Positions 18,146-34,370 are shown, counted from the stretch's first letter. The stretch: 64,000 nucleotides of DNA from Lepidodermella squamata (GCA_047495785.1 JBLDXI010000032.1:3472001-3536000); one strand, 5' to 3'. A program made the numbers and translations. The notes: generated by a model from the sequence alone, not told the origin.

Positions 18146-20190
18146 ATGTTCGACGACGATCTATTGACTCCATCGCCGTTCACTTTGCCATCAGTTGGTC
18201 TTTCATATTCACCCTCGCCGTCAGTCAATTCGCGCTATAATAACAATTCAATGGACTATGTTTTAACTGAACGTGAGGGGGCGACGTCGTTTTTCACGTA
18301 TTACACACCGCCCCGGGATCATCCACGCCCTAGAACTATGACTCCGACCAAGTTCCGGCAGGACAAGTTTATCACCCCGAAGTTTCTAGTGTCAACCGGT
18401 GGCCCGGGTCTGAAGCGGAATATTCAAACCCTGACGAAATCCCCAGTTCGCCATTCGGTGCCGCCGCGACTTGTCACGCCAAACGCAGTGTTCTATGAGG
18501 CCGTTGCGCCCGAAAAAGTTCCAGCAGACGCCCTGCAGACGCCGCGAAAATCACCGCAAAAAGTTGCGGAGAAATACCCGTCGATTTACCCGCGCCATAG
18601 CAACACGCCCCGAGCTGCTAAGGAATTTAAAACCGCCGAAGGTTTCATTTCATCGCAAAAGTGCCGATGGGAAGCTGCCGATCGAATCCTAACCGATCGC
18701 AGTAAGACAATGATTGCATGGACGCCGAAGGCCTCGCCGTCGAACGGAGCTTCCCCGCTGTCCGGGTTCTACCCGGAAATCACCAACAGCCGCACTGTTA
18801 CGCCGTCTAAATATCGACCAAATTTCACGAGCTCGTCAGTGAACACGAACGCTCGATTTATTGATATCGATATCGCCGCTTCAGCATCGCCGGCTACCGT
18901 AGTTTACGTGCAGCCGTTGACAAAAGCTGGGCGTCTCTTAACCCCGACAAAATACCGAAATCCATCGTCCAACTCCCGGCGCGAGCCGCAGGTCCTGTTC
19001 CCCATGGCTTTTCTGTCCAATGTCTCGACCCCGTCGCAAGACCTGGAAGTTATGGCGATTAAAGCCAAGGCTGATGATGTGATATCTTGGTCGTCGATTT
19101 CCTCATCAGAGGACGACGGAGAAAAAACTACAGTCGCAGGGAAATCTGCGAAAAAGAGTGTCAAAGTCACGTTCAACGAGGCGATAGTTGTTAGGGAAGG
19201 GACCAAAACCACCGTCTCCAATCCAGGCTCAATATGTCGAGTTGGTCTTAGGCACCGATCTTCATCGGCTGATTCAGTCAGACCCTGCGAGTTCACGAAG
19301 GACGAATCTTGGCAGGAAGACTCGACAGTTCTTAGGCACAAATTAGAAATCAGCAAGAATGACATAACGCCATGCCACTACGACGTTGCTGTCGAAATTC
19401 TGACCGGCGACTTTTTCAACGAGGTCAACGAACGATTCGGCCGGCTCTACGTCAAACACATTATTCAACTAGCGAATCGGCCGAAAAAGCGAGCTCAATC
19501 ACGAGTCATTATGAGGCATAGCCTAGATACCAGCTCGAAATTTGAGCAGTCTTTAGCCGCGGCGAAAGCTGTATTACAGAAACGGCCGCATCGAACGTCT
19601 TTGACTAGAGCTCAATCGGCCGAATGTTTACTGCCTTTGATTGAAGCGGAAACAATTAGTGCCGATGATGCTGTTATTGACCTGAAAGATGACGACAGCG
19701 ATTCGGATCAGCCCGGACGTAGGCGGCGGGTGTTTATCAGCTACGCACCGGAACAAAAGCACATCGCCCACGCAATTTGGAAGAAACTTCTACCAATCTA
19801 CGACGTGGCGATCGATGAAAATGTTGATCGATCGAATCCGCCCACGGAGGAGATAAAGAAAGGGGTGAGTTGCTGCGTATTTTAACAATGCTAAATGTTT
19901 AACTAATATCGATTCGTCCGTTCACCTAGATCAAACGAGCTGATTTGGTAATTATGTGCTATAGCGAGAGCTACGCATCGGTTATATACCCGGACAGTGA
20001 GGCTTATGTCATAAATGAGTTGCGAAAGCCGGTGATGCCGATATGTGTCGAGCAAGATTACGAGGCTGAAGGATGGCTGGCGAAAATTCTCAGAGCCGAC
20101 TACGTAACGCCTGAAACAACTCTGCTAGAGCCTGTCCTAGATGAAGATCTCGACAGCCTGTTGACGGACATCGAACATTTATTGCCTTAA
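18146..20190 (+). CDS. TIR domain protein 3 with long S/T-P-rich disordered N-terminus
   Basis: Exons 18146-19864 and 19930-20190. VFISYAPEQKHIAHAIWKKL...IKRADLVIMCYSESY...DSEAYVINELRKPVMPICVEQDYEAEGWL is a typical invertebrate TIR_2 pattern. Confidence 0.85.
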
Positions 20191-20501
20191 AAATTTATGC
20201 CCGTGTGAATTTTAAATATTTTTTAGGTTTTTTCAAATTTTCATGAAACTTTTTATGTATCCTCTCGCATCTGCTCTGATGATAAAAATAACTTCAATAA
20301 TGGTACCTGTTCTGTCTACGGTACGTTGCATGTCGCAATGTTGACATCCATTCTTGTGGCTGAAGTTACAGCACGCAGGTGTTGTGCACTTGTGTTATCA
20401 ACGCATAACAATTCCACACACACATACATTACTACTACCTATAGCACACACATACATTAAAACCAAGTTGGGTATAGAGACCAGTTTTAGTATACTGAAA
20501 T

Positions 20502-22901
20502 ATGATTTTTGTTAAGAAACACCTGTACGTATTCGCAGCGTTCACGGCATTCTCCCTATCATTCAGCGCATGGGTTTTAAGCGTTCGATCCGGTTATTGG
20601 CAGCTCGTCCAATCAAGGGAGCCGCTCGAAGAATGCGTGTTTCACGACTGGTTCGCGCCTATGGAGTCAACGGATTTATCGCTAAGCGATGATGTTATCA
20701 ACATAGCCTTCCTCGTTGTTCAACACAGGCCAACGCATGCCGAGTCAGTTTTAGGCGCTGTCAGCAGCATCTGCGATTCATTCATGCATAAAAATTTCGT
20801 GAAACGGCTCAACTTCACGTTTTACATCATAGCCGACTCATCCGCCTCGAATTTCTCAGACGGCCCAGGCTACTGCGGCTACCTCATCCATATACCTGTT
20901 GACGTCAAAGACGAAGTCGACCCTAACCGATGTGATATTGTGCTGACCAACTTGGATAGCCATCCTTACTCCGATAAAAACGTGTATCGCAGCACGTTTA
21001 TCGTCGATTCGAAGGTTCGTTTTGTTGGAAGAATGAACCCGTGGCGCCTGTTGACCGGCAATTTAATCGCCTTTGCGCATCAGTCGATGATTAGCAAACG
21101 AGGACGGTGGTCTACCGGCTCGGCGGTTTACACTAGCAAATTTTTCGGCGGCCACCCTGAGTCGATTCGATCGTTCTGTGATAAATTGAACGCCGATAAT
21201 AAGCCGATGAGTTTTCAGAAGGAGTTTGATAAGTATATGCACGAGCACCCACCCTCGCAGACAGTTTTCATCGACATTCACGGTTGCGGTCCGATAAGCA
21301 AGATTTATCCATCTTTCGTGTTCACCGGGCTGGTGCATGTCCCACTTCACGAGGAAATCACGCATCTTCAGTATCTTGAAGTTTTGAAAGAAAGCGAAGA
21401 AGTCGAGCAGCGGCGGCAAAATGCGATTGATGTCGCTGATAGCATTAAAAGGAACTACTTCTCTTCAATTGCTAGCAGGCTGAATGGCGATCAGGTAGAT
21501 ATTTTTTTAATTTTCTTTGAATTTGCCAACTTTTCTTATTTTAGGATTCCTATTTCGTTACGGCTACTTGCCGATTTCCTAACGCTACGTGTTACGATGA
21601 TCTTTTTGAGGAAACTTATGGTAAAGGATTCCTACCTCCCGCGAAATATCGAGCCTTAGTACTTGCGTCCGATAACACCTTAACTCGTTGTGCTTATGCT
21701 GAAAATTCCTGCAATGGTTTAGGTATTTTTCCTGATTTTTTATTTAACAATCCTAAATTGCGGTTTATTTTAAGGTGACCGATTACGTGGTAGTATCACG
21801 GCCCTTTACTTGGCGATTGCGACTAAGCGGGTGTTCCACATGGATTGGATTAGGCCGGCTAATGCTGCTGACTATTTCTTGATAAACGAGCACTTCTACG
21901 GGCAAGAAAGCACCCCGAAAGCCTATGATTCAAAACACGAGGCTGCGAATAATGCAACTCATTGGATTCTGCATCGAGGCGATATTGATGAAACTGTCTA
22001 TTATAAAGAGCTGGTTCGAGAAGACTTCATCTCGAATTATTCGAATTATTCCAACATCAATCTCATGACAAATCGATACGTTGGCTTGGAAGCTGTCTTG
22101 AAGAATCCTTCGTTTAAAGATTCGTTGAGAAAAATGGTCCCGACAGCGTTGAAAAATAATGGCGATTTTTTACCGGTCATCTCTGGCGGCATGCGAGCTA
22201 TTTTTGAGAGGCCTAATAAGCGATTTTCAGATTTATTCACTCGAGTCATCGAAGACACTATCGGATACGATTTCTGGCTGAGTTCGATCAAAATTGGAGT
22301 GCAAATTCGGACGGAAGGTATTTTTTATAAAAAAAATTCATGAATAAATTCCAGTTTAAATTTTGTTATAGCTGTGGAATTCGGAATGGGATTTCGAGTA
22401 GTTCCAGCTCAAGTCATGTGTTTCATCAACGAAATAGCTCGAATAATTTCTTTGAAGGTTCGAAACTCGTACTTTGGCGAGGAAAGTCGGGCTATAAGCC
22501 TATTCATCACAGCAGACTGGGACGATGCGTATTCGTTGTTCACGAAGTCCTCGCCATTCGCCGACTATCCGAACATGAAAATGTTTTACACCGGTAAAGA
22601 GTTCAACCTGACGCTGACTCACATGTCGAAAAGCAAATTCAACGCTGCAGCGATGGACGAAGATGCGCAATGGATGGAGGGCGCGAAGGGCTTTTTGGAC
22701 TGGTACATCTTGTCGAAAATGGACTACCTCGTCATTAGTCGCAGTGGGTTTGGCGAAAGCGCGGCGTTACTTTCGTTGGCTCCGACTCGCCGATTCCGGC
22801 ATTGGCTTAGCAAAAACGGGAAATGCGAGTTTGAGGACTACTATGAAAAGATCTCCAGTCTCACTGTTGCTCCCAGTCTTGATATCTACGACGTTCTTTG
22901 A
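20502..22901 (+). CDS. Type II membrane glycosyltransferase A: GT6/ABO-like domain plus fucosyltransferase-like (GT-B) domain
   Basis: Exons 20502-21494, 21545-21722, 21775-22317, 22372-22901. N-terminal TM; FYIIAD, FFGGHPESI, KYMHEHPP (GT6-like); CNGLGDRLRG, IGVQIRTE, FITADW, DWYILSKMDYLVISRSGFG (FUT motifs I-III). Confidence 0.85.
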
Positions 22902-23042
22902 AACATTTTGGCAATAAATTTTTGAAATTGAATAAAAACTCGTGTTTAGTACTCAACGTTGCCGTAGTCGGGCTTACAGCTTTTCAAGAGGGGATTAAAC
23001 CGGCGATGTGTTGGGAGAAAGGAATATCTTCATGTTCAAACA

Positions 23043-23840
23043 ATGAATCAACATAGGCTTTTCCAGGCCTTTTCGGCCCTAATAATTCTTTGTGCTATTT
23101 CTTTGTCAACTTGGTGGCTATCTCGTGGCGCTTTCCCAACAGCAGTTTCCAGCCAAGGCCATTGGGTCAGACTGAGAAATTAAGAATATAAGCACGTTCT
23201 AAACGTGGCTATCGCCTTATTCCACCACCGAAATTCAATCTTCAACTCAACAATCGCATCAATAGAGAACATTTGTGAGTCTCTGGTCAAGGACGGCAAT
23301 CGGAACGGCATTAATGCGACAGTCTACGTGTTTTTGGCGAGGGACATGTACGACCCCACGAAAACTGCTCTTGGAAGTGCAACTTGCGCTCGGATGATTG
23401 TCTACCACATAGAGGAGAACGCCGACGATTCGGACATTGACAGGTGTCAGATTTTGTTGAAACGCTTTTCAAACGATGGCTTGTTCTTCGCGAAATCATG
23501 GTTTGACAGAATTTTTGTATCTGACTCAACGCTGAGTTTCGCCAGCAGCATTGATTTGGCGGCTTACTCAGGAGAAGGCTTGCTAGCTTTCACGAATCCT
23601 TCCAAGGATTTCACTTCAGCAGTCTTCGCCGGTCCCTTACAGGCTGTCATGGATCTCTGTATCGCTCTATCGAACAACAGCGAGGAGAAACGATTCCAAT
23701 TGAAATTCGATCAATATTTGCAGGCTCATTTGCCGGCGCAAACCGCTTTATTACGAAAGAAGAACGAGAAATCTGATTTACGGAACACTTTCGACCTGGA
23801 AATTTCAGCTAATTTTTTAGGACCTGTCATTGAAATTTAG
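23043..23840 (+). pseudogene. Stand-alone GT6-like paralog with an in-frame TAA (pseudogene, or a 27-nt micro-intron)
   Basis: ATG 23043 encodes a signal anchor in the same frame as the 23205 ORF, separated by TAA 23181-23183. DIDRC, VFAGP and FQLKFDQYL match paralogs A-C; no FUT domain follows. Confidence 0.55.
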
Positions 23841-24109
23841 TTTGATTAAATAAATTTTCGTATTTTTTTTATGTCAAAGCGTTAAAAAATAATGGAACGC
23901 GTTTTTTAAATAAAAAAATATGTTAACAGATGAACAATGGCGGAGTTGTAGCCATTATTCAACTTGTTAGGCATGCAAGTACCCATGAGCTCGATGAAAA
24001 GAAGCACTATGTAAACTATATAAGTTTTTTATTTGACTATGTTACACTATGAATTTTAACTATACATACCCCTATGTATGTTTACCACTGGGTAAGGCCT
24101 TAAACTGCG

Positions 24110-26580
24110 ATGAAGATGGTTCAACCTGCTAGCGAACTTGCAATGCAGTTGAAACAATTCTTCGCTCATCTATTCGCGAGGGTGCAGAGTTCTCGCTCAA
24201 CGAAAACATTGATTGTCTTTCTACTAACTGCTCAATTTCTGATTCCCTTCGCCTACTTCGGCGCTCGGGGAATAGCGGCCTCATTCGGTGTAGCCTTGAT
24301 TAATAGTCGAATTGGTTCCTCGCCTCCTGCTCCTATCTGTGCTGTATATGAATGGCTCGAACCGCTGTCTAACAATAAAAGCCTGAATACCTCAAAGCCA
24401 TCCGTCAAACTTTCTGTAATTTTGGTCACCAAGTTGGAAGAAACCCATCGGGCCGGCCAATTAATGACCGAAATTTGCGGAAATTTCGTTAGCTCAAGCC
24501 GGCAATCACTGGATGTCAAGTTTGTTATCATTTCGAGCAGGCCTAAAACTGGGCTGAAATTCAAAGCAAACTGCGGCGAAATCGCCCATTTCGACACGGG
24601 AAATTTTACAGACAGTGACTTCGAGATAGATAGATGCTCAATCTATTTGAATTTCTGGAAACAGGCCAACTTGAGTGACTCCGATATCGTCATAGCTATT
24701 GGCTCTTCAATTACAATACCGACGCAATTAAACGCGGATCGCCTGTTAGCTGAAAAGCTGGTCATTACGGCCAGGCCGTCAAGTATTGAAAAACGCGGCC
24801 GGTGGTCGAAAAATTCATTCATCTACCTGCAAGACTTGATTATGGGAAGGCCGGATGAAATCAGGCTGCTATGTGAAAGTGTGTCCAAATCGCCGAATTT
24901 TACGCTGAAATATCATCGCCATGTATCGAAAAATCCAATCACTGCCTCGAGGAAAATCATGCTCAACTACAACGGTTCAGATTTCAATCGGCCGGGTATG
25001 GTCGACAACTTTGTCTACACGAAAAAAATCGTGTTTTCGCCAACTAATGAAGAAACTTCGAATCAGCTAAGACTAGCCGAAATTTCTTTGGAATCCGAAG
25101 AAGCGACAAAGCGGCAAAGAAAATCCGACGCAGTTGTTAAAGAAATTATCCAAAATTACTTTAATGCTGCTCAACAAAATAGAGATATGGTATTATTTTC
25201 CTTCGAGTTTTGTTTTCATTAAAAATCACTTCAATTATTCAGCAATCCAAGTTCGTTTCCGCAACGTGCAATCCGAAATTGAAACCTGGTCAATGCCCTG
25301 ACGAAAAGTGGATCGGTTACCTGCAAAGTTGGATCGTCAACGTTCCCAATGTGAAAAATTTTTGCATATATAACAGGCCGTTTCAATGTCATGGGCTAGG
25401 TAAGAATCGAATTTATCAAGGAGACAGGAATTTTAGTTATCTTTTACGTAGGGGACAGACTTCGGGGAACTCTGGCAGCTTTCTTCCTGGCGATTGCAAC
25501 TAACCGAACTTGTATTATCGATTGGAAACCACCCGGGAACTTGTCTCAATACTTTCAAATCAACGAGAACTGGTTCAATCGAACGCAAAGTGAATTCAGC
25601 GAATCGTTTGAGAAAGCTTCGGAGGCAACGAGAGGATACCTCTTTAACAGCGAAATTCCTGACGAATGGATTCATGAAGCTTTAAGTGACGAATCTTTTT
25701 ATGACACAAACATTAACAACACGAATCTTGAGGTGATGGGAAATCGCTTTTCTGGGCTTCAAGGTGTTCTGAGAAACAAAGGATTCACTCCAACGCTGAG
25801 ATTGATCATACCATCGGCGTTTGAGGCGAATTCAAACGAAATACATGACATGCTACCGGTGATGTCAGCTGCTTTACGCATCATATTCGCGAATCCACAG
25901 CCAAAACTGCAACAACTCATCGATGGCATCATCCACGATAAGGTGGACAAGAGTTATTGGGAAAATTCTACCAAGATAGGATTGCAAATACGAACCGAAC
26001 GTAAGTTTATCTATAGAAGCCCTAATTCAAATTTACATTTTTTTATCTTTCAGAAATCGAACATCCCCCAGGTTTCTTTCCTCGCGTTCAGCCTGACCAT
26101 CTGAAGTGTTTTGCTGATGAGATCATGCGAATTGTGAACACGAAGATTCGCCTACAACCTTTTACGAAACCAAAGCAGCATATCACGATATTTTTGACGT
26201 CAGATTGGGCTGAGGCAAATAAAGTCTTGGTAGAAACTTTCAGCCGCATCCCAGAGGCTAGATTTTTCTGGACTGATGGTGTTAAAAACTTGGCAACAAC
26301 TCATATCGAGATAACTCAACTCACTGGTTCGCCAGAGGAGCTTTGGTGGAAAGGAGCGAAAGGATTTGTGGATTGGTACCTTCTAACTAAGATGGACTAT
26401 CTTATTATCAGTAGGAGTGGATTTGGGGAGAGCGCGGCGTTGCAGTCATTGAAGCCAACCCGGCGATTTCGGCACGGCTTGAACACTGGAGTTGAGCACA
26501 ACTGCTACTTCGAAGACTATTACGAAGAATTGAGTGACCTGCTGCAGTCAAACACACTCGACATTTACGACGCGCTGTAG
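24110..26580 (+). CDS. Glycosyltransferase B: GT6-like plus fucosyltransferase-like fusion
   Basis: Exons 24110-25189, 25243-25399, 25452-26000, 26054-26580; CHGLGDRLRG, IGLQIRTE, FLTSDW, DWYLLTKMDYLIISRSGFGESAA. Confidence 0.85.
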
Positions 26581-26735
26581 AAGCGGAAGATATTACGCTT
26601 TTACACATCAGTACTGCTTCCTTTGTTAAGTTTTGATGTTACTCGCGAGGCCAGTATAAAAAATAACGTGACTAAAATGATGTGTGTGGTTTTTCACTTT
26701 AACAATGTTACAGCCACTGGCTATGCTTAATACTC

Positions 26736-29151
26736 ATGAATTTAAGAGCTTTGATTTTAGAGAGATGCTTCCGTTGTTGTAATCGGCAATTGTTCCTAGC
26801 CCTTCTGATCAGCCAATTGCTTGTGCTAGGGACAATTTTCATCTTTTCCTACGAATTCTTACTGGTTAAAAGTTTGGTGTCAAAACCTAATAGCAATAAT
26901 ACTCGAGTCGACGTTTGTTCCGGAGATGTGTTGGCTTATCGGCCTAGAGGTTCAGCGCTGAATCGGACTGCAAAATTAGCTGTCTTACTGATCAACAGAG
27001 ATGCAGATACAACGGAATTCATACGCTCGAGCTGCAAGGCTTTCCGAAGCAATCAATTTTCGAGAATCGAACCAACATTTTTCGTCTTTGCAAGCAGAGA
27101 ACAGCGGCTTTTTCTTAAGAATGAATGCGGAACACTGGTTTCAATTACCGACAGGCTGATCAACGAATCTGATATCGACATTGACCGATGTGAGGTCTAT
27201 TCTCGGCATCAATCAAAATATGACTTCTACGACCATTCCAAATTCTTAGCCACGTTTTCAATAGATCCAACTAGTGTCAACGTCGGCGAAATAGATGTTG
27301 ACAGTATTTTGCTGCTAAACGGTGCGAGTTTGGCTCATCCATCATTGATTGGTAAAACGTCGCGATGGTCCAAAAGCAGCAAAGTTCACAACAGTAAGGG
27401 ATTTTTCGGCCGTCCTAATGAAGTCAAAAAGATTTGTGACAAAGTCACAAAATTCACAAAACCATCAAAGCTGGGATTCCAGCTGAGATTCCACCAATAT
27501 CTCACAAAGAATCCAATAGCTAGAAAAATTTTAGTCAACTATACGAGGCTACAATGTGAATATTTCGGAAGCAATGGCGGCTTTTACGTCACGCGGCAAA
27601 TAAATCTCACTTTAACTGAAGCTGAATACGAACTGTGGAGATATCAGGAATTGCTGAATGAGGAAGATTTCTTGGGAAAACGGGAGGAAAAGGTCAACGA
27701 CATAATACGGGACTTCAACATCAGATACCGACCAAGCATTACGAGGGATGTTTTGCAAAAGGTAACGTCTTATTTCTGGTGAAAATTCCCTTTTGAGTGT
27801 CATTGAATTTAGCGTGCAAAGTTTGTTACTTCGACTTGTCGCTTCTCAAAAACAGAGTGCTATGACGATAGATGGATCAAAAATTCTGCTGGTTTCATTG
27901 ATGCACCGCCCAGTTTAGACGGAAAGTCGTTGAAGATGAGGAATCCTCTTGGGTTTTGCAAGCACGTTGGAACACAGTGCAATGGCTTAGGTTTGAAATA
28001 AGGATTTGCCTTTCACATTCTATTGTAGCTTTATTTCCAGGAGACCGTTTGCGAGCAACGGTAGCAGCGTTTTATCTAGCAATCGGGCTTCAACGTGCCT
28101 TGCACATTGACTGGATCCGTCCAGGCAATGTAGCGGAATTTTTCGATGTCAACTCGAATTTGTACAAATCAGACAATCGCACTTATTCCGAATTAATTGA
28201 CAAAGCGACGTTGTCTTCAAAAGGAATGTTATTCGACGGATGCCTATCAGACACGAAAATTTTCGAGCATTTCTCGAATCCCCAGCTCAACGGAGAAACT
28301 TCACAATTTTCTAATATCGATGTCATGGGTAATAGATTCTCAGCCCTGGAGGGTGTTCTCAAGAACAAAGGTCTTAAGATGACTCTGAAAACCTACGTGC
28401 CATCAATTTTCAACGAAGGCAGCAATCCAAGCGATCTATTGCCTCCGATCTCAGCCGTGCTTCGAATTATATTTGAACACCCTAATCAAAGGCTCATGAA
28501 GCTATTTGAACGCGTGATTAGCGAGTCGATCGGCTGGGATTACTGGCAAAGCTCGATAAAAATCGCAATTCAGATTCGGACCGAATGTAAGAAAATAACT
28601 TTTGAAATAACCATAAAATAATTTAGGTATCCGATATTTTAGACGTTGATAATATGAAAAGTCGAGTGCTGCCGCAGCATTTCTCATGTTTCGCGGCGGA
28701 GCTCGAGAAATTGATCCGGTTCAAAATTCGAAATCCACTCATGCGAAGAGGAAACCTGCCGGTATCAGTGTTTTTCACCTCGGATTGGAACAACAGCTAT
28801 CCCATGTTTTCCGAGTCGGTCAAAGCATTCAGCTTCGATAGTATCAAATTTTTCACTACTGATAACAAGTTCAATTTGTCATTCGGACACATTGAGAAGA
28901 CCGTGTTTCACGGAACCGAAGAAGACCAGTGGCGTGGTAGCGCTAAAGGCTTCCTAGACTGGTATATTATGACGAAAGCTGACCATTTGATAATCAGTCG
29001 AAGTGGGTACGGCGAAAGTGCTGCATTGCTATCCCTAAAACCCGTTCGAAGATTTCGTCATGACCTCAGTAACTGTTTTTTCGATGATTATCACGAAGCG
29101 CTGCCAACGCTCCAATCAAACTCTGAAGTTCCGATTTACGACGTGCTTTGA
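26736..29151 (+). CDS. Glycosyltransferase C: GT6-like plus fucosyltransferase-like fusion
   Basis: Exons 26736-27761, 27813-27990, 28041-28586, 28643-29151; LAHPS, GFFGRPNEV, CNGLGDRLRA, IAIQIRTE, DWYIMTKADHLIISRSGYG; AATAAA directly after the stop. Confidence 0.85.
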
Positions 29152-29911: not shown

Positions 29912-32900
29912 TTACAGCGGGTCCAACGACGGCACCCACTGTTGCTTCTGCTGTTCCAGCTCGATGAGAGCAGCCACCTGAGCACTAATCGCTTCAATGC
30001 TATTCTCACGCTTCGAGTCGACCGAGAAAATCGCGGAAATGATATGGCGATACTCGTTTTCGATCTGGACGAACTGCTCAAAGGCATCTGAAGCAGACGA
30101 ACGGTTCAATTTTCGCGGCATCAACAGATCGTCAACGCCCTTGATGCGTTTCAGCTGGTTGGCCGACGTGTGCCGGACGTAGATAACGATCGGGAAAACG
30201 CGTCGAGCTAACAGCCGCTCGACAGTCGCCGGGCCGACGTCCATCAGACAATGCCGGCCTTGTTTCGCCGCGTTTGACAGCTGGTTCAGCGAGAAGGTCT
30301 CGCGATGGCCGCTGTTACTAGGACCAGCAACTTCGATGGTATCACCGTTTTCATTCTGAAGAGAGCGCGAGATGTCAGAGGCCACGAAATAACTCAAACT
30401 GCTTGTCTGATACGACGGCGAGTAGGAATTATTGCCGTTTGCGCGGGAAATGTCTAGGAAAGAAATTTGAAATTAAAAAAATCCACCTTAAACAATTTTT
30501 CTTACCAATGTGAAGGGCTTCGAATTTGTTCGGGCAACAAGAAACAATACGAGTGATTATTGCATCAGCGATAGGTGAAAGAATCACGACAGGCCTCAGG
30601 ATGGCACGATCGAGCGGTTCGACGCGCTGGTAGACGACTTCCGGCGACCAGGAACAGGTCGAGGCCATCATCGAAGCCGGGTGAGAGCTTTGGTGATCAC
30701 CACTGTGATGGTCACCCGAATGGTTTGTAGTAGCAGCAGCAGCAGGTCGAGGTAATTTACTCAAGATTGCACTGGAAGAGAGCCGAGCCCGGCGAATGAA
30801 GTTGGACAACCGTCTCGTAGACGAGCGCGGCGTCTGGGAAACAGCGGAATTATTAGCGCCAAGGTTGTTGAGCGAATTAGTGGAGCGACGAAGTAGTAGC
30901 GATGGCTCATCTTCGAAGCGAAGTTTGGATGGGATCAAACCACGGCGAACAGGTTGGCCGGTCGGGTCGAGAACCCAGGCAGACCAAAATCCGGCTACAG
31001 ACCGGTGACCCCGGTCTGGCATGGTGTTGTCGACGTAGAGGACCGAATCTTTTTGCAAGGGCAGATAAAACGGCGCGTCAGACGCATCTGGCGAGATGAT
31101 CACCCCGGCCGCTTGCCAATCAACGAGGCAACGCACGTAAAATCCGTCACCCGAGCCGTTGCTGCTACGGGTCCGTTTTAAGGTGGCTTCGTATTTGGCC
31201 GGGTTAGACTGGGCGAGAATCACGAGTTCTTCACCCGGCCGGCCGAGTTCGACGTACGCGTTTTCTAGCGTCGCGCCTCGAAGACTCACGCCATTTATCT
31301 CGAGAATTTGATCGCCGACTTCGAGCGATTTCGTCCCAATCAAATGGCTATCGGCAGCTAGAGACCCGACGAAAATGCCCGAAACATTGCCGCCTATCAA
31401 CTCAATCTCGGAATGATCAGTCGGAGTGGCGGATGATGCTGAATCAGGCCGGCTGATGTAGACATAGCGAGGCGTTTTCGCCGTTTGCGTGAGGGACTTC
31501 GACGACATTGAGTTGCTGCGACTCGGCTTCCGCGAAACATGAGGCGAAAAATTGAACGGGGATGCCGATTTCGAGGCGCCCCTCGCGACTGTCAGCGCGA
31601 TCTGCGGACCGCTCTGAGCTAAAACATGCAGAGACGTTTGGCGTGTTTCACCTCGAACACTGACGCCAGAAATTTCGACAAGTCGATCGCCGGCTTCAAT
31701 GCCGGCCAAATGAGCAGGCGAACCCGGTTCGACCGCTGTGACTAGGGGTCCGAGGGACATTGAGTCCAGTTTCGTCTCGCACGTTTCCACCTTAAAACCA
31801 ATGCAGTGTTCGACAAATAAGGCCTGATCACACTGATCGCCGAGTAGCGGTAACGACTCACAGAAAATTGACGTGTTTCTTATAACAACGTCATCAATGC
31901 CGCCTGCGAGATGGGGCCGCCTTAAACTTCGAGGAGTTGCTGGCGGGAATGAGCAACTCGGTACAAGCTGAGAGGTTGAATTCGAGGAACTCGGCGGCCA
32001 CTCGACGGGTAGTGGCAAAGACGGTCGTTGTTGAGCGGTTTGCTGCTGCTCGCGTAACACCCCGAGATACCGGCCATTATTGTTGTTATTCGCCTCATCC
32101 GAGTCGCTGGTACTTGTAACCATATTGCTGCTATCCCTGAGCAAAACCTGGGCGTTTAGGTCAGCATCGGAATCGATAGCGGAATCACGGCTGCGATTAT
32201 TGCGGTTACCGGCGTTGTTCATCGACGAAGATGTCGATGAGCTGGATGTAACCGTTCGCTGGACTGCTACAACCCGGTTCGGGGCTGGTTTTGCCTGCGG
32301 AGCCGAGATGGCAACTTCCTCGAGCTGCCCGGTCAAATCAGCTACCCGCTGGTTAGCATCGTCCCTCTCTCGCATTAGCTGTTCGGTTAGAGCTCGAAGC
32401 CGATCGCGTTCTTCGGCCATTCGCTCTCGTTCGCAAATCGCCCACTCACAGCGCAACCGGCTAGATTCGAGTTCGTCGCATTTTTCCGTTAGAATTTGTT
32501 CAAGGGTAAGAATTTTGCCCTCCATGTCACTGCCGCCATGTTGCGCCTTTTCAACATTTCGATTAGCAAGATCGAGAGCAGCCTTCAGAGAATCGTTCTC
32601 TCCTTCAAGGTTCTTAACCTTTTTCTCAGCAGCTGTTAGCCGGTCTTGCAGATCTTCAAGCTCCCTTAAAACAGTATCACGCTCCGACATAACTAGAGCA
32701 TATTCGTGCTCTTTCGCTGCAAGTCGTTCGACAACACCCTGCATCTCTTGATGCGCCTTCATACGCACCATTTGAACTTCGTTTTTCAACCGCTCCACCT
32801 CAACGTATGAATCATTTCGATTTCGAATTGCCCAGGAACAGTGATGCGATAGAGAAGTCAACTCGGTCTGGAGCCGATTCCGCTCGGTTTCCAGTTCCGA

Positions 32901-34370
32901 GAGGCGAGCTTTTAGGGTGGCTGATTGATGATTAGGATCTTGGCTGTTATTTGCCGATGAAATTCCGCCGGGTTCACTCGTGCATGGCGAGTCGATGACT
33001 GGAGCGCGGCTCTGTTGCAACGCGTGTTGCAGCTCAGGCCCCGATACCGAGTTTGGTAGGTTCATGTAGTTGCTGTAAGCGCCTCGGTTAGCCGCAGCGG
33101 CCCGCTGAGCCTGTCGCGGCGCTCCGGCTGAGATTCGCAGCGGCGTGTTGCGTTGAAACGGTTGGTCAGCATCGGCAGTTCGGAAAGACTGGTTTCGAGA
33201 CAGATTAACCGGCGACGCTGTGTTCTCGTGCTGCGCTTCGAAGGGCAGTGGCGGCAATAGCCGGCGCTGCGTCATCGCTGAGATGGCGCCGCCGCTGATC
33301 GACCGGCCTATCATCGCCGCTTCGTCGTCGCTCGGCGGCTGCTGGTGGCTGGTGTAGGGTGATGACTGAAAATCACGCGGTGAAGACATCGACATGACCA
33401 TTCGCGACGCAATAGGTTGATTCCCTCCAGTATTATATGACGACGTTGCCATCCTGTTTTGTTCGGTTAGATCAAGTGCAAATCCAGCCGGGCAACTCAA
33501 CTCTGCATTAAAAGGAAGGTAAAAAAATATAACCGTGAAATGATTGATGTGGGAATCTACAACAAGTACCTAAATGACAGCACAATAATAGCGGCGAGAG
33601 TATAAAAAAATGAAAACATCCAGCTTAATATATTCACAAGTAAATGATGATTCGAGGGTAAACGCGCGTAAAATCGCGATTTTTTTAAGGCGGGCTTGTT
33701 GGCATGCAGTACAATTTCCGAGATCACCGTTAATATAATAATGTGGGAGCGGTGATTTAGCGTAAACAACATCGAAACCGGAATAAACATCGCGCGCGTG
33801 CCAAAATAATCGCCTGATGATAGAATCGCCGCAGATCATGCGCCTTAACGATATTATTTATGTGCGAGCGGTCTAAAGGAGTGCTGCAGAGATGATTGTG
33901 TTCGACAAGGCGAGGAAGTGTTTGTTGGTTATACACAGTTCAGTTGTAGTAAAAAACAACAAACGACGCTTTCGAAACGTTAAACAACGAGATTAACCTC
34001 GGTAGCAGTAATAGCACTGCTGGCTCGATTGTTGCGGTAGGTGGTGTTGGTTTTGGTGGTGGTAGATGGAAGTGTAGGCAGCAGCACTACTATTAGCATT
34101 ACAACTACCACTAGTGCTGTAGGATGAGCAATAGTAGGCCGATGAAGACTGAACAAGAGCGGCGGTGAGCGCGGCGGTACTGCTCTCGATTAGCTGGCTT
34201 CCGCTGCCGCCTAACTGCTGCGACGTTGCAGCCTGAAACTGAAGCAATTGAGGCGGTAATTGCGGTTGGTTGCAGCTCGACGGATAATGAAGATAAGAAG
34301 AGGACGGTGACGCCGCCGGATCTGTTGCCACGGCGCACTGGTAGCACTGTGGCTCCGACATCATCATCAT
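29912..34370 (-). CDS. DLG5: Discs large 5 MAGUK (coiled coil, two PDZ, SH3, GK)
   Basis: Exons 34370-33998 (inferred first exon), 33502-30506 and 30453-29912. Coiled coil YALVMSERDTVLRELEDLQD, RDSAIDSD, PDZ GGNVSGIFV, SH3 GDGFYVR..LYVDNT, GK RHCLMDVGP, C-terminus WVPSLDPL. Alternative start at ATG 33452. Confidence 0.88.

Follow-up and report, generated by a model that had tools for sequence, protein, structure and literature searches.

Within a 64,000-nucleotide (nt) stretch of the genome of Lepidodermella squamata (GCA_047495785.1 JBLDXI010000032.1:3472001-3536000; this whole stretch is called the window below, and positions are counted from its first letter), the interval 20502-29151 on the plus strand carries three tandem four-exon paralogues, g1, g3 and g4, whose predicted products join a domain resembling glycosyltransferase family 6 (GT6) to a fucosyltransferase-like domain. 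The gene models were built by hand, and the spliced frames of all three genes are free of internal stops. Each gene has the same order of parts, that is, one N-terminal hydrophobic anchor, a first domain (domain 1) of ~235 amino acids (aa), a charged helical linker, and a second domain (domain 2) of ~400 aa. A truncated fourth copy, g2, lies between g1 and g3. The features are as follows.

20502-22901, plus strand: g1, a two-domain type II membrane protein of 747 aa; exons 20502-21494, 21545-21722, 21775-22317 and 22372-22901
20529-20585, plus strand: hydrophobic signal anchor of g1 (aa 10-28), the top-scoring 19-residue Kyte-Doolittle window (score 1.78)
20631-21344, plus strand: domain 1 of g1 (aa 44-281), a divergent GT6-fold domain in which DSK stands for DXD and FQK(E) for W-H-D-E
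21345-21494, plus strand: helical, charged linker of g1 (aa 282-331), ending at intron 1; assigned from sequence and paralogue alignment
21545-22898, plus strand: domain 2 of g1 (exons 2-4), GT37-like, with the motifs GLGDRLRG, IGVQIRTE and ISRSGFGESAA
23043-23840, plus strand: g2, a truncated copy with anchor and domain 1 and without domain 2; its frame is broken by a TAA stop at 23181-23183, and an internal stretch is deleted
24110-26580, plus strand: g3, 770 aa, open spliced frame; exons 24110-25189, 25243-25399, 25452-26000 and 26054-26580
24335-25042, plus strand: domain 1 of g3, with GSS at the DXD position
25243-26577, plus strand: domain 2 of g3
26736-29151, plus strand: g4, 752 aa, open spliced frame; exons 26736-27761, 27813-27990, 28041-28586 and 28643-29151
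26910-27614, plus strand: domain 1 of g4, with DPT at the DXD position
27813-29148, plus strand: domain 2 of g4

All nine introns of g1, g3 and g4 have GT..AG ends and are 50-56 nt long, and their three aligned positions and phases are identical from gene to gene (following the helical linker; within GLGDRLRG, between GLG and DRLRG; and after QIRTE). A sequence-only reading of this stretch had described three paralogues with three common intron positions and the order transmembrane segment, domain 1, linker, domain 2, all of which the hand-built models reproduce; its count stands for the full genes, the fourth copy g2 having been overlooked. The internal deletion in g2 removes the KRGRWS stretch, and a tiny intron that would take out the stop codon was rejected, the sole GT..AG pair spanning 27 nt. 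Though transcribed, g2 is probably a pseudogene. A tblastn search of the window returned no further copies beyond g1-g4.

To follow splicing, cDNA contigs of a public run were compared with positions 20450-26449, an interval that covers g1, g2 and most of g3 and ends upstream of g4. Contig joints skip exactly the three introns of g1 (21495-21544, 21723-21774 and 22318-22371), with GT..AG ends, and none of these joints was seen in a DNA run from a strain that is 95-99% identical. Contig depth over g2 reaches ~15 at 23450-23649, and cover of g3 is weak and confined to exon 1. Because the g1 introns are spliced out in the cDNA contigs and because a metagenomic relative, P0004 (described below), has both domains in one open reading frame (ORF), the data support the view that the two domains form one protein, as the sequence-only reading had held. 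That two separate genes have been wrongly joined in the model is scarcely credible. It could appeal to the fact that each g1 splice joint is found in one short contig only and that no single read covers the whole mRNA, and the linkage of all four g1 exons is indeed inferred rather than read from one molecule; against it stand the observed joint between exon 1 and exon 2 with its GT..AG ends, the preservation of frame over all junctions in three paralogues, a domain 2 that has neither an anchor nor a start of its own, and the absence of any intron between the two domains in the P0004 ORF. In the cDNA run X1, a loose end at 20532 carries letters that resemble a cDNA amplification adapter, and the many joints between opposite strands in the same run look like library artefacts rather than biology.

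We next asked to which family domain 1 belongs. An AlphaFold2 model of g1 domain 1, made from an alignment of eight sequences, has a predicted local distance difference test score (pLDDT) of 71 and a predicted template modelling (pTM) score of 0.76. When this model was compared with the PDB by Foldseek, the best 50 matches were all GT6 enzymes (alpha1,3-galactosyltransferase [alpha1,3-GalT], ABO GTA/GTB, and BoGT6a), with E ~1e-9 and a template modelling (TM) score of ~0.58 over ~218 columns. VIA-align, which is independent of Foldseek, placed BoGT6a at Z 17.1 (root-mean-square deviation 3.1 over 192 residues) and GTB at Z 15.9, followed by LARGE1 (GT8) as the next family at Z 11.0 and by general GT-A proteins and nucleotidyltransferases at Z 9-11. 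In an Atlas shape search the top cluster was 100% PF03414 (TM 0.68), and by language-model features PF03414 accounts for 36 of the 60 nearest clusters. For a profile comparison, we collected 62 phage GT6 proteins from genes with the motif WHDESHLN that were confirmed as PF03414, one of which matches ABO at E 4e-37; hhalign aligned the eight-member domain-1 profile (A2) to this set with a probability of 97.2% and P 1e-10 over 202 columns (95.2% in local mode), and the reversed control gave P 0.2-0.8. The five motif pairs that had been matched to ABO by eye in the sequence-only reading all fall in aligned columns of the independent profile-profile alignment.

Identity between domain 1 and any GT6 is ~15%, and plain sequence searches find little at this distance: Pfam gave no family for the four window copies even at E up to 10, nor for the relatives P0002, P0004 and P0005 at E up to 0.01; a domain-1 profile (A1) met only a chance match among PDB sequences; PHROGs gave isolated weak matches only to the domain-1 family; and no single domain-1 member was significant on its own against the phage GT6 hidden Markov model (HMM) or profile. 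The negative results with Pfam, PDB sequences and single members, together with the many GT-A proteins and nucleotidyltransferases that reach Z 9-11, are what would speak for a generic GT-A (Rossmann-like) likeness not derived from GT6. We consider such an origin very improbable, given that GT6 lies 5-6 Z units above all other families, that the Foldseek list contains nothing else in its top 50, that the profile-profile alignment is full-length with a clean reversed control, and that the language-model features agree independently. Fold comparison, profile-profile alignment, and language-model features thus support the identification of domain 1 as GT6-like, in agreement with the sequence-only reading.

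For domain 2, an 11-sequence profile (A4) searched against 177,635 PDB sequences returned four matches, all of them GT37: AtFUT1 (three constructs, best E 0.018) and AtFUT4 (E 0.21). The alignment with AtFUT1 pairs GLGDRLRG with GLGNRILS, IGVQIRT with IGIQVRV, and ISRSGFGE with TSAWSTFG, and the three fucosyltransferase motifs, including the guanosine diphosphate (GDP)-binding Arg of motif I, are invariant in g1, g3 and g4. The domain was modelled from the relative (P0004:317-645), and in a comparison with 48,161 chains the C-terminal half of the model ranked NodZ (Z 8.8), FUT8 (8.2), and AtFUT1 (7.1) first to third, with POFUT1 and POFUT2 lower down the same list; Foldseek likewise put FUT8 at the top, together with AtFUT1 and NodZ. 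The linker-equivalent stretch that opens the P0004 model is predicted to be helical, at low confidence. For both halves of domain 2, the Atlas features indicate the families NodZ, FUT8, XG_FTase, O-FucT, and GT11. Stand-alone relatives occur in bdelloid rotifers and molluscs, and some of these proteins carry PF03254, which is confined to more distant relatives of P0008.

Several points weigh against this assignment. The P0004 domain-2 model is C-terminally truncated, has a pLDDT of 57, and is usefully modelled in its C-terminal half only; the fold scores (Z 7-9) are middling and the PDB E-values marginal; and neither domain of the fusion reaches any Pfam threshold. An earlier domain-2 profile (A3) gave only chance matches to the PDB, and Pfam, including PF03254 (XG_FTase), gave no match at threshold for the exon pieces, P0004, or P0006-P0008. 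Taken together, the profile search, fold ranks, and Atlas features support a placement of domain 2 in the alpha2/alpha6/O-fucosyltransferase superfamily, with a GT-B fold and GT37 as its closest family, which bears out the superfamily and the three motifs named in the sequence-only reading. AtFUT1, an inverting enzyme of GT37, uses GDP-fucose to fucosylate galactose (PMC9201394), and by analogy we infer that domain 2 may carry out a similar reaction.

Do the GT6-like domains retain the residues required for catalysis? Residues were mapped via phage GT6 to ABO numbering, in which a single offset reproduces Tyr126, Arg188, Asp211/213, His233, Glu303, and Lys346. At the DXD position, the window copies read DSK (g1), GSS (g3), DPT (g4), and DST (g2), and the relatives read DSN (P0004) and DGD (gene 2 of the same metagenomic locus, L001); the first Asp is kept in three of the four window copies, and the second Asp/Asn of DXD/NXN is lost. 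The W-H-D-E-S stretch reads F-Q-K-E (g1), F-T-L-K (g3), F-Q-L-R (g4), and F-Q-L-K (g2), compared with F-H-I-D in P0004 and Y-H-E-N in L001 gene 2. It is two residues shorter in the window copies, so placed that the column of the catalytic Glu (ABO Glu303, alpha3GT Glu317, BoGT6a Glu192) lies inside the gap; His301 and Asp302 are replaced in all of them, and an aromatic residue occupies the Trp300 position in all eight members of the domain-1 family. The FFGG turn is kept, and g1 and g4 have also retained the His233 equivalent; the nucleotide-contact position Tyr126 is not kept. At or beside the position aligned with the C-terminal Lys346, there is no Lys or Arg in g1, g3 or g4, in a region where the pLDDT is <50 and the alignment is weak.

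In characterized GT6 enzymes, NXN takes the place of DXD in the metal-independent bacterial members, the E192Q substitution leaves BoGT6a with low activity, and the C-terminal Lys (ABO Lys346, alpha3GT Lys359, BoGT6a Lys231), which binds the diphosphate, is conserved throughout the family (PMC3961637). Because domain 1 of the window copies lacks or does not conserve the DXD/NXN motif, the H-D-E triplet, and, in the weakly aligned region, the C-terminal Lys, it is, as far as its residues can tell, most likely a pseudo-GT6 that is catalytically dead. The label "apparently inactive" in the sequence-only reading therefore fits the residues found, and its further proposal of a working two-step blood-group-like enzyme is unsupported for the window copies, as these have lost the first two elements and appear to lack the third.

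This interpretation has points against it. The mapping derives from a profile alignment at ~15% identity with a gap in the region of the catalytic Glu, and a shift of the gap could bring g1 Glu198 (domain numbering) to the catalytic position, g1 being the only copy with such a Glu; g1 has in addition retained the first Asp, together with a Lys that could stand in for the metal, and the Arg188 equivalent is kept in the window copies. Residual or non-canonical activity of domain 1 is accordingly given some weight, although we regard it as doubtful. The relatives look less degenerate than the window copies, which suggests that the fusion was active in the ancestor and decayed later.

Sequence variation between strains bears on whether the domains are still in use. 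In the g1 coding sequence, all 37 listed differences from the other strain are synonymous, 36 of them at third codon positions (binomial p 2e-16 overall), and the same holds for all 12 listed differences in exon 1 (p 2e-6). Identity among the paralogues is 25-29% in domain 1 and 41-44% in domain 2. Both halves are maintained by purifying selection, and domain 1 changes faster. It should be noted that purifying selection on domain 1 would suit a catalytic role and a non-catalytic one equally well.

A domain-1 profile search of 1.84 billion representatives recovered three true relatives, all metagenomic, plus two spurious cadherin-repeat proteins, and no GT6 proteins; a homologue search with P0004 returned only P0004 itself. 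P0004, from locus L001 on metagenome scaffold ERZ23486764, encodes both domains in a single ORF of 645 aa without interruption. The locus holds two tandem genes (L001 1836-3993 and 4064-5761), both with the two-domain layout, and comes from an AT-richer organism. There are no introns at the positions used in the window, and a single intron is found elsewhere, inside a GETAS motif (between GETA and S); the window paralogues and their L001 relative thus differ in intron place, and the intron positions are common to the paralogues, not to both lineages. Upstream of the two-domain genes, on the minus strand, lies a metazoan-type receptor ligand-binding gene (L001 3-1202). A metagenome scan with an alignment of the domain-2 C terminus (A5) found only two loci, L123 and L124, in which a domain-2-like part stands alone without domain 1; their fucosyltransferase-like ORFs (L123 and L124 4263-5405) are ~25% identical to the window domain 2, with no GT6-like part upstream. 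The GT6-fucosyltransferase architecture is thus rare, having turned up in this genome and one metagenomic relative, and full-text literature searches found no paper describing such a fusion.

As to origin, domain 2 is a member of an animal (spiralian) family; with its relatives among bdelloid rotifer and mollusc proteins, it does not look foreign. For domain 1 no donor can be named, because identity to any GT6 is so low. A phage origin of the fusion was considered and rejected: the phage GT6 fusions sampled pair with GT2, GT4, or GT31, never with a fucosyltransferase. The phage motif WHDESHLN itself occurs in >120 viral contigs (loci including L013, L046, L057, L067, L078, and L111); some of these ORFs are fusions of 450-1000 aa that combine GT6 with GT2, GT4, or GT31 (Galactosyl_T), and several others have 180-200 extra N-terminal residues without a family match.

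The reading that we favor, with moderate confidence, is that a GT6-derived non-catalytic module has been fused to a fucosyltransferase and is represented here by three genes and one decayed copy. Each gene encodes a type II membrane protein, probably of Golgi type, in which the anchor is followed by the GT-A domain derived from GT6 and, beyond the helical linker, by the GT-B fucosyltransferase domain, a member of the GT37/GT23/GT11 superfamily. This second half has kept its donor-binding motifs and most likely moves fucose from GDP-fucose onto a terminal galactose-type acceptor, possibly in alpha1,2 linkage if the GT37 analogy holds. The GT6 half, which has kept its fold and several structural and acceptor-side positions (the first Asp, FFGG, the Trp300 aromatic, and the His233 equivalent in g1 and g4), would most likely be non-catalytic because it has lost its catalytic residues yet stays under purifying selection; instead of working as a second transferase, it may bind glycan or substrate, or support the fucosyltransferase as a scaffold or folding aid. 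A probable starting point is that neighboring GT6 and fucosyltransferase genes fused in this lineage, after which the fused gene would have been duplicated in tandem and the GT6 active site would have decayed.

GT6 enzymes act on H-type acceptors, as the GT6 half would have to do in a protein that is still bifunctional: domain 2 would make Fuc-alpha1,2-Gal (H-like), to which the GT6 half would add alpha-linked galactose or N-acetylgalactosamine by way of a non-canonical, metal-independent site. Consistent with this, bacterial GT6 enzymes function without DXD (PMC3961637), g1 has the first Asp, Lys as the third residue of the motif, and a Glu that lies two residues away from the catalytic column of the alignment, purifying selection acts on domain 1, and L001 gene 2 keeps a full DGD and the Y-H-E stretch, which suggests that the ancestral fusion was bifunctional. 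On the other hand, the acidic residue of g1 is unconserved (replaced by Lys in g2 and g3 and by Arg in g4), both His301 and Asp302 are gone from every window copy, the GSS of g3 offers no acidic or amide residue at all at the DXD position, the Tyr126 contact is lost, and the universally conserved C-terminal Lys is absent, in a weakly aligned region; moreover, domain 1 diverges far faster than domain 2. For the window copies we rate bifunctionality as a possibility, well behind the non-catalytic module. Still less likely is that domain 1 has become a ligand-free structural stem or oligomerization spacer derived from a dead GT6, in which case the protein would be a plain fucosyltransferase on a bulky stem. 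The loss of catalytic residues, the low identity among paralogues, and the decay of g2 would all be expected of a stem; a domain of this kind fits poorly with the wholly synonymous listed variants of exon 1, with the conservation of pocket-lining positions (the Trp300 aromatic, FFGG, and the Arg of D-x-D-R-C), and with the retention of the domain in a relative as distant as P0004.

More speculatively, the family may have begun as a single-chain synthase of blood-group-like glycans, composed of an alpha1,2-type fucosyltransferase and an active GT6, with the GT6 halves in the window since turned into glycan-binding pseudoenzymes; we hold this only tentatively. To judge from the DGD and Y-H-E of its second gene, the L001 relative may still be such a synthase. 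If so, a natural fusion would physically link the H and A/B-type antigen steps in an invertebrate.

Compared with known GT6 enzymes (ABO GTA/GTB, bovine alpha1,3-GalT, BoGT6a, and the phage proteins; PF03414), domain 1 is closest in its GT-A fold and collinear over ~200 residues, with matching features from the strand that leads to the first Asp of DXD through the His233 turn (g1 and g4), FFGG, and the Trp300 aromatic to the K-Y...P helix. It differs from them in having DSK/GSS/DPT for DXD/NXN, a replaced H-D-E that is shorter by two residues, no C-terminal Lys (in the weakly aligned part), and no Pfam match, and in being fused to a second enzyme domain in an invertebrate, whereas GT6 stands alone. 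Domain 2 likewise resembles GT37 (AtFUT1/AtFUT4) and the XG_FTase-like (PF03254) rotifer and mollusc proteins: the GLG(N/D)R loop, the IG-Q-R element with its Arg, and S-x-S-x-FG align, the C-terminal Rossmann half superposes, and type II topology is common to both. It falls below Pfam thresholds, however, has a much shorter acceptor-binding half than plant FUT1, and carries the additional N-terminal GT6-like domain.

Functional coupling of the two enzyme classes has precedents. In E. coli O86, an alpha1,2-fucosyltransferase and the GT6 enzyme WbnI form a bacterial gene pair that builds a blood-group-like glycan, and in this pair, as in the vertebrate FUT1/2-ABO pathway, the fucosyltransferase and GT6 classes are functionally coupled; there they are separate active proteins, whereas here they share one polypeptide whose GT6 half looks dead. 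LARGE1 (GT8 plus GT49) offers a parallel in architecture, in that a single type II membrane chain holds a GT-A domain and another glycosyltransferase domain, but both domains of LARGE1 are active and build a repeating polymer, whereas here the GT-A half has lost its catalytic residues and a GT-B fucosyltransferase forms the other half. The proposed role of domain 1 has its nearest counterpart in Cosmc, an inactive GT31 paralogue that chaperones T-synthase and thus a glycosyltransferase fold under selection after catalytic loss in the service of an active partner, although Cosmc is a separate protein from another family.

GT6 was reported in 2014 to be absent from invertebrates (PMC3961637). 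The present locus places a GT6-derived domain in an animal genome, fused to the very enzyme class that makes the GT6 acceptor, and this fusion is genomic evidence, from an independent source, for a partnership of GT6 and fucosyltransferases beyond the vertebrates. It is also a natural example of a glycosyltransferase fold that has stayed under selection after its catalytic residues were lost. Since Pfam and plain sequence searches miss both domains, similar hidden GT6 descendants may exist elsewhere.

The genes that flank the array in the window are of other kinds. Upstream, at 18146-20190, lies a Ser/Pro/Thr-rich 579-aa ORF that ends in a weak TIR-like match (E 0.19), with a likely further exon at 19945-20190. 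On the other side, at 30429-33500 on the minus strand, a 1023-aa ORF has a coiled coil and two PDZ domains, and a guanylate-kinase-like ORF is found downstream of it, at 29912-30397; taken together, the two ORFs resemble a discs-large/MAGUK-type scaffold protein.

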